NCBI GenBank assembly: GCA_950097015.1
Contig: CATNEN010000024.1
Span: 6,200,001-6,264,000 of the forward strand
Direction: 5' to 3'
DNA length: 64,000 nucleotides
Source: Macrostomum hystrix
Lineage: Eukaryota; Animalia; Platyhelminthes
In this document: piece after piece, positions 7,178 through 60,665 of the stretch
Layout of the letters: each line of letters opens with the position of its first letter
Position numbering within the stretch: the first letter of the stretch is position 1
Program-made: the position numbers and the translations under genes
The notes under the pieces: model-generated
What the model saw: the letters and a program-made list of their open reading frames with translations, nothing else
Databases searched by the model: none
What the model was told of the DNA's origin: nothing

Positions 7178-7684
7178 TTATTTACCCCAGCCGGGAGCGC
7201 GCTTACCCCAGCCAGGAGCGCGCTTGCCCCATCCGGGAGCGCGCTTACCCCATCCGGGAGCGCGCTTACCCCAGCCAGGAGCGCGCTTACCCCAACCAGG
7301 AGCGCGCTTGCCCCAGCCAGGAGCGCGCTTGCCCCAGCCAGGAGCGCGCTTGCCCCATCCAGGAGCGCGCTTGCCCCAGCCAGGAGCGCGCTTGCCCCAG
7401 CCAGGAGCGCGCTTGCCCCAGCCAGGAGCGCGCTTGTCAACCATGACTTCATCTGCAGCATCCAGGGTGAAGTCATTGTCCATAGAAGAGTTCTCGAGAT
7501 CGTCAGCGACAGCAGCGGTCGCCTCATTCTCGTTGGCGTCACCGTCCTGCTTGCCCCAGCCGCGCCTGTCGAGCACCGTGTCGGCGACACCTGCTGTCGC
7601 GGGCGCGGTGGCGGAGACGGCAGCTGAGATGACGGCTGCCACAATGAGAAGCAGCATCAGCAGTCGACTAATCGCGGCTGTCAT
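7178..7684 (-). CDS. APGWamide (cerebral peptide) neuropeptide precursor, 168 aa
   Basis: ATG and hydrophobic signal peptide (MTAAISRLLMLLLIVAAVISAAVSA), an acidic spacer, then 12 APGW-G-K(R) copies with dibasic sites and amide-donor Gly. One extra RR-GW-GK motif. Confidence 0.95.
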   Translation of the reverse strand: MTAAISRLLMLLLIVAAVISAAVSATAPATAGVADTVLDRRGWGKQDGDANENEATAAVADDLENSSMDNDFTLDAADEVMVDKRAPGWGKRAPGWGKRAPGWGKRAPGWGKRAPGWGKRAPGWGKRAPGWGKRAPGWGKRAPGWGKRAPGWGKRAPGWGKRAPGWGK

Positions 7685-7710
7685 TGAACTCGGTATTGGC
7701 TCTTTTGGGT

Positions 7711-7902
7711 CTGGGATGGCGTTGCAAATATGATTACAAAGTTAGCATGACAACAGCGCACGATATATTCGCATGAACACTGACTCACCCTTAGTTTAGC
7801 CTGCACGGTGCAGTGAGATGCTGCTCACTGATGCTGAGTGAAGCTCCTACAGTCCGAGGTGAAGAGGAGGCTTTTGGGAAAGTCGTCAGCATATTTATAC
7901 CT
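7711..7902 (-). promoter_or_regulatory. APGWamide core promoter and 78-bp 5'UTR intron
   Basis: Minus strand: TATAAATA at 7892-7899, donor GTGAGT at 7788, branch CTAAC near 7745, acceptor TCCCAG at 7711. Confidence 0.6.
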
Positions 7903-8292
7903 CAATAGCTGCGCCCCTTCGCTCAGCCAGTCTCTAAGCTGTGAATAAATCCGATTCATCTGTGCTGCAGCGTGTTTGTCGGCCTGTCAAGTAAGTCGAG
8001 TTCGGCCCTCCTGGGCACTGACCCATCCCCTGAAAGATTAGGGACAGCTGCCGCATTTTCCTTTCAGTTGTCGCTAATTAAAAGTCATGCAAACTGCGAG
8101 ATTTGTGGATTACCAACTAAGCAAAGGTGGGACAACCGGTGCCACCTCTTGCTTGATTAAATTTGGATTTAGCTTTCTCTGGCATACATCGGATTTGCCC
8201 AGCTACACGCGAGCTTGTCATGCTGACGACTGTCTTGATGAAAATCGACTGCCAGAAACTGACGACGACGCCTTGTTGATACAGAATCCGAA

Positions 8293-9627: not shown

Positions 9628-12554
9628 ATGACAGCACCAACTATGGCTAATGCGTAAGTTAACTTTCATAGATTGAATTCTGGTTTGAATGAGTAAAACG
9701 TGAGTTATCGTGTTTGCCTCTCGCACCAACGTCCCTTAGCTCTATTCCGCGGTGAGACCACATTTATTTGGGGTGCAGCCGCGGGGAGAAGGCACACCAA
9801 ATGATGAGCCAATGCCCACAGCCCTCGCACAAAAAAAGATTTATTATTAAAAATTAAGTAGCTAGCTGACTACAATTTGGTCCTCATACTGAGAATTTGC
9901 ATTGAAAATCCTATAGAGAAACTCACCTGAGAGTACTGTGTATGCTACTCAATACGAGTGACATTAAATAATAGAACTATTTGCCAAGTGGCTGCCGGCT
10001 ATGGGGTAACTGAGGGTGGGTGTGGCGTCCCCCAGTCCATGGACTGAACATGGAGCCGCAATAGCTGCGGCTGAGCTGTCGGCTGCACATCTGGCCCTAT
10101 TTTTACTTCGTAATCAATTATGATGACTATTTATTATTATTATCGCTGTTATTAATCCTCAGTGATTGGGACAGCGAGTATCCTGGCGACTGGGAGTTCG
10201 ACAAATTTATGGAATCACTTGAAAGCAAAGGTGAGTGGTTTGACCTTGTCACTTTTTAATCCGGTGCATTTTTTGCTTCGTCTGCCAAGCAGAAATTTTG
10301 CTTACAAAGCAAATTTGAAATTTTGAATATTTTGGTAGATACAGAAAATAATGTCAGTTATTTGAAATACCCCGAGTTCTTTCTACTGTTATAATAGAAA
10401 AGTAAATTATAAAAGTGAACAATAGCGGAGTCTGCGAACACCCGTTCCACCTGTCTTGGAATCAGAAGACACTAGTAAGCCTATTGTGCGCATTGACACT
10501 TAAACAAGTTAATTGAATTGGGTGTGTTCTGGTCTAAACTGTGTAAGACCGTATTAAGCATCACTTCCTTTGTTAGTTATCCGTGCAACTATCCATTGCT
10601 TGAGCCTGGACTCCTATTGTCAAACTGTTTTGCGAGCTAATAAACTTGCACATATATTTGAAAAGGGGTCATTTTCAAGCATCTACATTTGTTAGATAAC
10701 ATATGTCAACAATTTATCACCACTTTTTAATTTCACTTATATTTTTACAGGACAGCAAAGCGTCAAGGACCAGCTTATTAAGGAACTGTCCGACTTTGTT
10801 AAATCAGTTATAGGTAAGGCTGCATTGTTTGCCAGAATCTAATAATAATCCAATTCATATTCACAAGCTACCTTCCCGACCCAGCAATTCTTTCCCTGAA
10901 CTACGATTCCTCCCCCACAACTTGACACATCTCATGACTCACAATGTCATTTCCCTTTTAAATACTTTTCTGACCCACTCTAAATCATTTTCTGAACCAC
11001 AAACTCAATTCCTGACCCACCGATTCGCTTCCTGACCCACCAAGTGATTTCCTGACCCACCAAGTGATTAACTGACCCACCAATTCATTTCCTGACCCAC
11101 CAGTTCGTTTTCTGACCCACCAAGTAATTTCCTGACCCACCAAGTAATTTCCTGACCCACCAATTCATTTCCTGACCCACCAAGTCATTTCCTGACCCAC
11201 CAAGTCATTTCCTGACCCACCCATCCACCCTCGACCCAGAGAGCCGCGATAACCGACCCGACGGTCTCTCCTCGAGGGTCAGGGTGCACGAGGTCATCCT
11301 CATTGTGCTGCTGATCTCGGATGGCGACTGGCACGGCGTCCTGGACTTCCCCGCCGGCCTGTCGGGAATTCTCGCCTTCTGCGACGACCAGGGCAGGCGG
11401 TGCAGCGGCGAGAGCGGCTTCTTCAAGGCGCTGGACACGGAGACGATGGCGCTGCTGTGGCAGCGAATCAAGGGCAACAGGACCGGCAAATACGAGACCT
11501 TCGCCAGGGCCATGAGGTTTGCGGGCCGAGGGCGATGGGGAGCTGGGTGGGATCTTGACCGGCTGGAGGGATCAGCAGTATTGGGCACTGGGTGGGATCT
11601 TGACCGGCTGGAGGGATCAGCAGTATTGGGCACTGGGTGGGATCTTGACCGGCTGGAGGGATCAGCAGTATTGGGCACTGGGTGGGATCTTGACCGGCTG
11701 GAGGGATCAGCAGTATTTGGCACTGGGTGGGATCTTGACCGGCTGGAGGGATCAGCAGTATTGGGCACTGGGTGGGATCTTGACCGGCTGGAGGGATCAG
11801 CAGTATTTGGCACTGGGTGGGATCTTGACCGGCTGGAGGGATCAGCAGTATTGGGCACTGGGTGGGATCTTAAGCAGAGGATGGGATCAGGAAAAGGAAT
11901 GGGATCTGGAACAGAGATGGGATCTGGAACAGATGATGGGATCTGGAACAGAGATGGGATCTGGAACAGATGGTGGGATCTGGAACAGATGATGGGATCT
12001 GGAAAGGGAACGGGATCTGGATCAGATGAGGGGATCTGAAACAGATGATATCAGATCTGGAACACCGGATCGGATCTGGAACAGGGATGGGATCTGGAAC
12101 AGGGATGGGATCTGGAACAGGGATGGGATCTGGAACAGGGATGGGATCTGGAACAGGGATGGGATCTGGAACAAGGATGGGATTTGGAACAGGGATGGGA
12201 TCTGGAACAGGGATGGGATCTGGAACAGGGATGGGATTTGGAACAGGGATGGGATCTGGAACAGGGATGGGATTTGGAACAGGGATGGGATCTGGCACAG
12301 TTGGTGGGATCTGGAACAGATGATCCCATCCTTCCCGTGCCAGGGCCTGCGTCAACGGAGGCTACTTTGGCCCGCCGAGCGCGGACCGATGCCGGCGGAA
12401 ACGTGTCTATCAGCTCGGCGAGAAGTCGTTGGAGGAAGTCGGTCGGTTGCGCCAGACTCTTTGGGAATTCGCGAACCAGCAACAGCAGCAGCGGAGGCAG
12501 CAGCAGCAGCTGAGACGACAGTGGGAGCTGCAGCAACAGCAGCAACAGCAGTAG
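9628..12554 (+). CDS. Divergent ETS-domain transcription factor, 214 aa; join(9628..9653,10163..10230,10751..10813,11240..11516,12344..12554)
   Basis: Phase-consistent GT-AG exons. The spliced product contains GFFKALDTETMALLWQRIKGNRTGKYETFARAMR...RKRVYQLG, matching the ETS pattern FK..D.E..A.LW..K....Y....RA.R...R.VY.FG. Poly-Q C-terminus. Confidence 0.72.
9978..10100 (+). mobile_element. tRNA-derived SINE copy in ETS intron 1
   Basis: Shares GCCAAGTGG, GTCCCCCAGTCCATGGACTGAACA and GCTGTCGGCTGCACATCTGGCCC with the inverted copy at 41720-41862. Confidence 0.6.
10965..11225. repeat. 20-bp minisatellite in ETS intron 3
   Basis: Tandem TTCCTGACCCACCAAGTCAT-like units that run into the acceptor site. 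Confidence 0.85.
11543..11871. repeat. 45-bp minisatellite (7 copies) in ETS intron 4
   Basis: CTGGGTGGGATCTTGACCGGCTGGAGGGATCAGCAGTATT(G/T)GGCA. Confidence 0.9.
11880..12325. repeat. 18-bp minisatellite in ETS intron 4
   Basis: Tandem GGGATCTGGAACAGGGAT units. Confidence 0.88.
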
Positions 12555-12922
12555 CAAGAGAACGATGAAAATGATTTATAAACTCCGTGATGAGTTATGG
12601 ATCATTTTTATTCAAACCTACAGATGTGCTTATTGATAACTATAAGGATGCGCGAGTACTGATTACAGTAGTACATCAAGTTTGTGCGTGCAGCCTTATA
12701 AAGCAAACATTTCTCTTCTGACTTTGTGCTATACATTTTTTCATAACTCTTTCTTAATACTCGTTATAAAGAAATTATTTATTTTCTTGTAACTGCCCAA
12801 TTTATAAATATAACTTTCCTGATTCATTCTGTACTGGTTTTTTAGATTAACCTTTAAAGCAGCTTTTTACAGGCGAATCGGCAACTCCAACTCTGAAGCA
12901 GCAATTCAAGTTTCAAATTCTA

Positions 12923-39632: not shown

Positions 39633-39751
39633 GTCAGCTAGCTGTGGCGCGTGTAATCAGGCGCCTCAACATCAATATATTGCTTCTTTCTCGTAGTGTA
39701 TTTTTTAGTTTTTTTTATCTCAGCGCCAGTTTCTAAGAAATTTTCAGCCGC

Positions 39752-40086
39752 TCAGGCGTAGAACTTGTCAAATTCGTCAGCCAGCACTGGGCGGTGCCGC
39801 CTGTAGAAATCTTCGGCATCGGTGTAGAACACCGGCTGGTAAGGTGACCGCTTGCCCCAGCCAATGGAGCGCAGTGGCCGCTGCCAAGGCTGCTGCTGCT
39901 GCTCTAGCTGCTGACTTGTCTGGACTGTCGGCTTGCCTGTGATAACAAATTAAAATGATTTAAAAGGAGTGTTTAGGATGTTATACAACGTGTCCATGTC
40001 TCCCAACACAATGTCCTACCTTCGCACTGGATGACCATCAATAGGCCGGCTGCCACAGCGATCAGAACGATGCAGAGCTTAGACAT
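39752..40086 (-). CDS. Small GWamide neuropeptide precursor, 83 aa; complement(join(39752..39936,40020..40086))
   Basis: MSKLCIVLIAVAAGLLMVIQCEG | KPTVQTSQQLEQQQQPWQRPLRSIGW-GKR-SPYQPVFYTDAEDFYRRHRPVLADEFDKFYA*. Signal peptide, phase-1 83-bp GT-AG intron, G-KR amidation/cleavage site, TATA about 110 bp upstream. Confidence 0.85.
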
Positions 40087-40192
40087 ACCCGGGAGCGATC
40101 TGCTCTAGACTGGAACCGATTGGCAGTGAGACTGAGTTAGTCGGGGCAGGAGCTGGTGTGGAGCGGCTGCTTGAGAGCCGGCGAGCGCGACA

Positions 40193-40202
40193 ATTTATAC
40201 CT
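40193..40202 (-). promoter_or_regulatory. TATA box of the GWamide gene
   Basis: AGGTATAAAT on the minus strand, identical to 7893-7902. Confidence 0.55.
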
Positions 40203-40935
40203 GAAATCCCACAGTCAAAGCCGAGCGCCTTTCAGGAAATTGAGACTGGCGAGTCCGCTAACTGGGCTGGCCCCTCCTCATCAGGTGAAGAGCGGAACTC
40301 ATTATGAAAGCGGCGGCGGCGGCGACTGCGCCACCCATTCTCCCGAGACGATCCTCTGGGCGCGCGACCGTCTTGAGTCACGCATGCAGGCATCCAGGAT
40401 GCGCGATGGATACAACTCGACTATTTGAGCAGCTATTTGAGCAGCCGGTGGGGATTCAATTTATCTCTAAAACGCTCGTTATAAGCTACGCAAGTTCTGT
40501 CTTGTCTAACTCGAAACTGGTTTCACACCCCCAAAAATTAAATATAATAAATGAGTCGCGAGAGAGACCTTGTTTGGTGTCACGCGACTGTAAAACCAAG
40601 TCGCTTTTAGAGCTGAACTGCATGCCGCCTGTATGAAAGGCACAGTTTATTGTTTCTTTATGGCCCCAATGCCTATTAAAAAAATGCAACACTTTCTCCA
40701 TTGCCGACTAAATGAGACAGGAAGGATTGCTCAGGATAAAATATATTGCTCAAGAATCGGTACATTTTTAATGAAGGAATTAGCTATTGCCTCTTCCCAA
40801 AATAGCTTTAAAGATGTGCAGGTGTGAAATCGGGTAGCTGTCACCTTTTGCCATCTGTCGAGTTGCTTTTAACTCTGCTGTGACAGTTTAATCAATTAAT
40901 GAGCACCGATACTACTAATGCGTACTACTGAGTGA

Positions 40936-41100
<165 letters not shown>

Positions 41101-41719
41101 CTCTCGTTTGTATCAAGTACTAACATTTTCAAAGCTAAAGAAAATGAACATTACAAGCCATTTTATTTTACGCTGCTACATGTTTTTCGCTTGCTGTTTA
41201 CTGCTGTTTGCTATGTCTCGCTGCATTTTTTTCTGTTTTATTAAGAATATATAAGTTTAACACATGAAAAATAATAAGTTGCATTTAGACTTCTATTTAA
41301 AGTATTCTACCAGTAACCTCATAAAATGCTAACTACAATGATCAGGGTGACATGAGTATGCCATGAGTACAAAGCATTTATTAAACAGCTAATTCTAAAA
41401 CATGAATGTTCTAAAACAACTTTACAGCTTAATTAAAAATTAGCAATCAGTTGTACGCATGAAAATAAAAAATTAAATTAAAATGAAAATTTCATTTAAA
41501 ATGATACAAAATACAGTGTTAATTTTGCACTAGCTTGTCAAGTAGTTCTGCATTATTTAAACAATTTAGCAAGTACAAAACAAGAGAATAGAGAATATCG
41601 CATTCAAATCCGTGCTCTTTCTAAAAAACTCAGTTATTTTGAGTTAAACAAATTTTAAAATGTTAAGTTTTTTTGTGATCTTAATAATAATATATATAAC
41701 TATAATTACTTACACCCAA

Positions 41720-41979: not shown

Positions 41980-60665
<18,686 letters not shown>

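Follow-up and report, generated by a model that had tools for sequence, protein, structure and literature searches.

We find a real, spliced small gene on the minus strand at 39752-40086 of the window, which is the whole 64,000-nucleotide stretch of Macrostomum hystrix DNA that we analysed. We call it the SIGW gene after the four residues that precede its predicted amidation site. The best explanation, which we consider probable, is a genuine, expressed two-exon Macrostomum gene whose product, a secretory prepropeptide of 83 aa, is of neuropeptide or peptide-hormone type. Exact splicing, an open reading frame (ORF) starting at the first AUG, a GC3 of 0.72, a hydrophobic core, a single WGKR and an RxxR site support this prohormone reading. 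Judged from its sequence, the gene appears GW-amide prohormone-like in its working, and we could not place it in any named family. The parts of the gene are as follows.

40194-40199, minus strand: TATAAA box of the promoter; the contig 5' ends at 40156 and 40152 follow 38-43 nt downstream
40087-40156, minus strand: 5' UTR, minimum extent (70 nt) from the contig ends
40020-40086, minus strand: exon 1, coding, 67 nt, ATG at 40086; encodes MSKLCIVLIAVAAGLLMVIQCE and the first base of Gly23
39937-40019, minus strand: intron, 83 nt, GTAGGA...CACAG, phase 1, GC 0.35
39936-39752, minus strand: exon 2, coding, 185 nt, GC 0.60, GC3 0.72; translation KPTVQTSQQLEQQQQPWQRPLRSIGWGKRSPYQPVFYTDAEDFYRRHRPVLADEFDKFYA, then stop
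39752-39754, minus strand: stop codon TGA, from the sequence and its translation
39634-39751, minus strand: 3' UTR, minimum extent from the contig end, reaching the edge of a 17-bp satellite

The two coding parts add up to 252 nt (67 + 185), giving 83 codons and a stop, and the intron splits a Gly codon as G/GC. Re-reading the minus strand, we recovered the coordinates, the 83-bp GT-AG intron and the 83-aa product of the original prediction without change. A retained intron leads to an in-frame stop after 37 aa. The 70-nt 5' UTR is free of ATG, which makes the ATG at 40086 the first in the transcript. The GC3 of exon 2 compares with a GC of ~0.38-0.40 in the surrounding region. The 3' UTR has no canonical AATAAA, showing only the variants GATAAA and AATATA.

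By run index, the SIGW transcript is present in six public runs (X1-X6) from two studies (P1 and P2). Comparing the assembled contigs of four runs (X1 and X2 from P1, X3 and X4 from P2) to 39645-40330, we found in every run one contig that skips exactly 83 nt, the intron at 39937-40019. In these four contigs the skip ends in CT..AC on the plus strand, that is GT..AG on the minus strand, and they match the window with zero other differences. The original prediction had suggested mapping transcripts across this junction, and contigs from four runs and two studies cross it in the spliced form. The spliced contigs span 40156 down to at least 39645, and the X3 contig extends 11 letters further, up to the satellite edge. 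The TATAAA at 40199-40194 precedes their 5' ends by about 40 nt. We take the X1-X4 runs as cDNA, though they are not recorded as RNA, because each amounts to 42-202 Mb in short contigs, and the SIGW contigs lack the intron and end like transcripts. The SIGW gene is probably well expressed.

Runs with three organism labels, X1 (organism A), X2 (organism B) and X3-X6 (organism C), hold the identical spliced transcript, including the 5' UTR. This identity could come either from near-synonymous labels or from cross-sample carry-over within study P1, and it is not evidence of cross-species conservation.

The 83-residue precursor is composed of MSKLCIVLIAVAAGLLMVIQCE from exon 1, then Gly23, and KPTVQTSQQLEQQQQPWQRPLRSIGW-GKR-SPYQPVFYTDAEDFYRRHRPVLADEFDKFYA from exon 2. 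The signal peptide claimed in the original prediction agrees with what we see in exon 1, which looks signal-peptide-like by its Lys3 and the 16-residue hydrophobic core that follows (9-residue Kyte-Doolittle means 2.0-3.5). After the core comes Q-C-E-G, with the small residues Cys21 and Gly23 at candidate -1 positions. Residue inspection finds small residues at the candidate -3 positions of the putative signal peptide as well, and a signal peptidase cut after Cys21 or Gly23 is plausible. The remaining precursor reads KPTVQ...PWQRPLRSIGW-GKR, followed by a cysteine-free acidic, aromatic tail. Its parts, as translated, are listed below.

39869-39936, minus strand: N-terminal propeptide part (G)KPTVQTSQQLEQQQQPWQRPLR, ending in R-P-L-R
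39880-39869, minus strand: RxxR site R-P-L-R, by the RxxR rule of PMC8557429
39857-39868, minus strand: SIGW, C-terminal core of the predicted amidated peptide
39848-39856, minus strand: G-K-R, amide donor Gly and dibasic site
39755-39847, minus strand: C-terminal associated peptide SPYQPVFYTDAEDFY-RR-HRPVLADEFDKFYA, with an internal RR site

The W-G-K-R at 39859-39848 is the sole WG(K/R)(K/R) site in the gene. Gly followed by a dibasic pair is the amidation signal, handled by prohormone convertase, carboxypeptidase and the peptidylglycine amidating enzyme. The single W-G-K-R with the acidic aromatic tail behind it bears out the G-KR amidation and cleavage site that had been claimed. Between the putative signal peptide and this GKR there is no dibasic site, and beyond the putative signal peptide there is no Cys. 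A microsatellite-like CAG run codes for the Gln stretch QQLEQQQQ.

Reading the layout in order, exon 1 would be removed as a signal peptide at one of the two positions above. Prohormone convertase would then cut after G-K-R, carboxypeptidase would trim the K-R and the amidating enzyme would turn the Gly into the amide, leaving ...SIGW-amide. The tail may be cleaved at RR to give two peptides, both acidic and aromatic, and the released SIGW peptide would act on a G-protein-coupled receptor.

The N-terminus of the mature peptide could be set in two ways. The original prediction did not include the candidate site RPLR/S (the slash marks the cut), where a further Arg stands three residues ahead of the Arg at the cut. 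In spiralian precursors, mass spectrometry supports cleavage at a lone Arg that has another basic residue 3-6 positions before it (Thiel et al., PMC8557429). By analogy, cleavage at RPLR/S could yield the tetrapeptide SIGW-amide, which would be of the same size as APGW-amide. With the signal peptidase alone setting the N-terminus, the product could be a 26-28-mer amide. We slightly favour the short SIGW-amide, or a mixture with the long form, over the long form alone. The N-terminal propeptide stretch may be either a spacer or part of the mature peptide. Its Gln stretch suggests a spacer rather than a bioactive core, because it is coded by a CAG run in a genome rich in microsatellites. Of the "unusual long GWamide" first proposed, the GW-amide C-terminus is again predicted here, but the long form is one option only, as RPLR/S permits SIGW-amide. 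The pyroGlu suggested for the Gln run would require a cleavage that nothing predicts.

As protein queries we used the two exons one at a time. In Pfam, exon 2 had no match above threshold, with Arc_C below it at E 0.12. A word-indexed search of 5.8 billion proteins returned 0 candidates, and the JGI metagenome scan found no relative. Among ESM Atlas look-alikes, recognition stayed under a useful level. In the full text of the literature, SIGWamide-type strings occurred only in unrelated contexts, the flatworm lists of McVeigh 2009 and Koziol 2016 lying outside this coverage; the supplements of planarian (PMC2953531) and polyclad papers have no SIGW entry. The original prediction had recognised no named family, and we likewise obtained no match in Pfam, in the two large protein searches or in the literature. 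Nor did an already catalogued prohormone turn up in the protein searches, the metagenome scan or the paper full text. Blank searches are weak evidence of absence in the genus, since the collections evidently lack the transcript ORFs of this species and the small unannotated ORFs of M. lignano.

The other large search, an exhaustive phmmer run against 1.84 billion representatives, gave three weak matches (E 8e-5 to 6e-4). We rejected them as coincidences due to repeats or low complexity: one is a repeat protein, the second a YDPALKYMGLGKR polyprotein and the third a trypsin-like protein whose repeats read SIGWG..SPYQ.

The original prediction leaned towards a long, single-copy Wamide of the MIP/allatostatin-B type, which would keep both Trp residues and signal via a MIP/sex-peptide-type receptor. 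The precursor resembles MIP in its predicted C-terminal Trp-amide with a second Trp upstream, and the W-x8-W spacing pointed out before is indeed there, with 8 residues between the two Trp. The pattern W-Q-(R/K)...G-(L/G)-W-amide, present in some MIPs of nematodes and insects, also counts in favour. MIP receptors read both tryptophans (PMC7270403), and a polyclad flatworm larva is reported to have MIP (PMC10396302). However, MIP/Wamide precursors are repetitive, with several copies of 9-12 aa peptides and cleavage sites on each side (PMC7270403), whereas the SIGW precursor has one copy. MIP peptides carry an N-terminal and a C-terminal Trp; in the SIGW precursor, no cleavage site stands before the first Trp that would release a peptide beginning near it. 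Its Trp spacing of 8 also differs from the 4 of npp-5 and the about 6 of arthropod MIPs. Planarian Smed-npp-5, with SAWRDMPW-amide x5, is multi-copy with W-x4-W (PMC2953531 supplement) and dissimilar, and the sequence searches link the SIGW precursor to no MIP or npp-5. The claimed MIP likeness did not carry beyond the spacing, and we regard a MIP-type peptide as unlikely.

A small gland-secreted protein or peptide (prostate/seminal fluid, adhesive or antimicrobial), non-neuronal and with its G-K-R unused for amidation, would account for the signal-peptide-like exon 1. It would also agree with the contig depth, which is fairly high in whole-animal type assemblies, depth being a poor measure, and with the lack of homologues that is usual for fast-evolving secreted reproductive proteins. 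But a lone Trp-Gly-Lys-Arg 26 residues past the putative signal peptide with an RxxR just ahead is the standard prohormone layout, and the precursor has no cysteines for stabilising a secreted mini-protein. On these grounds we regard a gland product as unlikely. That the locus is a transcribed non-functional or very young ORF, with peptide-like features by chance beside a satellite, is very improbable: it abuts the 26.7-kb satellite, carries a CAG-repeat tract and has no homologue in protein or metagenome searches, but a TATA box, a GT-AG intron removed in 4/4 runs, a first-AUG ORF, a GC3 of 0.72, a leader and an amidation site would be improbable by chance.

In the surroundings of the SIGW gene in the window, the satellite occupies 12922-39632 (26.7 kb) and adjoins the 3' UTR of the SIGW gene. 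It is built of about 1,700 copies of a 17-bp unit, ACATTGAGTATCAGAAG, at 77% matches and with a 45-bp higher-order period, and it shows strong GC and AT skew. The ETS domain encoded by an exon at about 11.2-11.6 kb shares 88% identity with M. lignano A0A1I8GJB6. This match places the DNA in Macrostomum, where prohormone processing is known, but not in M. lignano itself. Searching with this exon, we matched three M. lignano UniRef proteins only, two of them more weakly than A0A1I8GJB6, and M. lignano may have three ETS copies. At 11176-12568 on the plus strand, the ETS exon runs in frame into tandem repeats, which are GWDLDRLEGSAVLGT units and an 18-bp array at 12000-12319.

A 244-aa Gln/Pro/Tyr-Gly-rich ORF at 41980-42714 on the minus strand closely precedes the SIGW promoter. 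Among proteins of 134-427 aa it has no homologue with an E of 0.001 or lower, and it may represent the exon for the cytoplasmic tail of a neuregulin-like gene at 44743-45482. Minisatellite and microsatellite arrays at 40937-41102, 43000-44300, 48800-50400 and 50700-51600 give spurious long ORFs in several frames; examples are SATNYTLL x60, PVSHLSRVSSLPCLIS repeats and a TAC x55 tract.

Scanning the window in six frames for W-G-(K/R)-(K/R), we found a second GW-amide gene, which the original prediction for the SIGW gene did not include.

7684-7178, minus strand: canonical APGW-amide precursor gene, ORF of 168 aa with 13 APGW copies; wider locus 7178-7950; possible parent or paralogue of the SIGW gene

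Its precursor runs from a signal peptide through DRR-GW-GKQ and an acidic spacer to KR-(APGW-GKR)x12-APGW-GK-stop. A TATAAA lies near 7894, an AATAAA overlaps the stop codon, and a 5'-UTR intron is likely, with GTGAGT near 7787. The precursor is without the two C-terminal cysteines described for other spiralian APGW/RGWamide precursors, and an exact look-up of its sequence gave no match.

The APGW and SIGW genes are on the same strand, 32 kb apart. The satellite makes up 26.7 kb of this gap, and the ETS-like gene fills most of the non-satellite DNA between them. Performing pairwise BLASTP, we aligned RSIGWGKRSP with RAPGWGKRAP at 7/10 (E 0.004), the common motif being RxxGWGKRxP. At the DNA level, identity is limited to the 15-nt GWGKR core, apart from weak 10-11-mers. 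The two signal peptides do not resemble each other, and the genes are built differently. The tie between the two genes, as we infer it, comes from this 10-residue motif and the linkage. We tentatively suggest, as the likeliest origin of the SIGW gene, that it diverged from this multi-copy APGW-amide gene, because two GW-amide genes within a few kb of unique DNA would be unlikely by chance if such genes are few. Since RxxGWGKRxP is mostly dictated by the processing signal, we infer this origin rather than read it from the alignment.

If confirmed, the SIGW gene adds one more unannotated signalling peptide to Macrostomum, a model for regeneration and sexual conflict. It opens no long-standing question, and its significance is modest because orphan amidated prohormones are common in flatworms, with dozens of orphan prohormones in planarians alone. 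The linked APGW/SIGW pair offers a concrete locus for asking how spiralian GW-amide peptides diversify. The orthology of APGW and RGWamide was settled only in 2021, and flatworm data are sparse. A further reading, which we think rather improbable, is a new flatworm peptide family. This would be either a long W-x8-W-amide on a MIP/sex-peptide-type receptor (Drosophila sex peptide likewise has W-x8-W) or a SIGW-amide split from APGW-amide by tandem duplication, with its own receptor. If true, the locus would show, caught in the act, how a single-copy gene for a new peptide emerges from a multi-copy tetrapeptide gene.

We compared the SIGW precursor with further named families. It resembles AKH/RPCH/GnRH/corazonin precursors in the order of (putative) signal peptide, one peptide, GKR and associated peptide, and GW-amide is the C-terminus of many AKH and RPCH peptides. 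But in AKH, GnRH and corazonin a Gln (pyroGlu) comes right after the signal peptide, whereas the SIGW precursor has E-G-K-P-T-V there. Those peptides are 8-12 aa long, compared with 26-28 aa or 4 aa for the predicted SIGW peptide, which also misses the F/Y-S motif of AKH-type peptides. The likeness to luqin/RYamide lies in a single peptide near the signal peptide followed by GKR, with W-Q-R-P loosely recalling W-R-P-Q, though its position relative to the C-terminus does not correspond. Luqins carry a C-terminal R-(F/Y/W)-amide and usually a Cys-x10-Cys pair (PMC7041311), and deuterostome luqins end in RW-amide (PMC7041311; PMC7270403). The SIGW peptide would end in GW-amide without the penultimate Arg, and its precursor has no C-terminal Cys-x10-Cys.

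Precursors of the APGW/RGWamide family carry several peptide copies in their N-terminal half and, towards the C-terminus, two cysteines separated by 20-30 residues, with a phase-0 intron lying between the two (PMC8557429). In contrast, the SIGW gene has a single copy, its precursor is Cys-free after the signal peptide, and its sole intron is in phase 1 after the signal peptide. The units differ as well, with Ala/Val/Thr-Pro or Arg before GW in the family and Ser-Ile in SIGW; APGW units are preceded by KR, the SIGW unit by RxxR. A short GW-amide tetrapeptide as in APGW/RGWamide would form from the SIGW gene only if RPLR/S were used. What the two share is a predicted GW-amide C-terminus from GW-G-K-R and a basic residue directly ahead of the four-residue unit. 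Planarian Smed-cpp-1 yields VPGW- and TPGW-amide from ...KR-VPGW-GKR-SYQWIKK-TPGW-GKR-TYQW... (PMC2953531 supplement), and its GW-GKR-SYQW is echoed by the GW-GKR-SPYQ of the SIGW gene.
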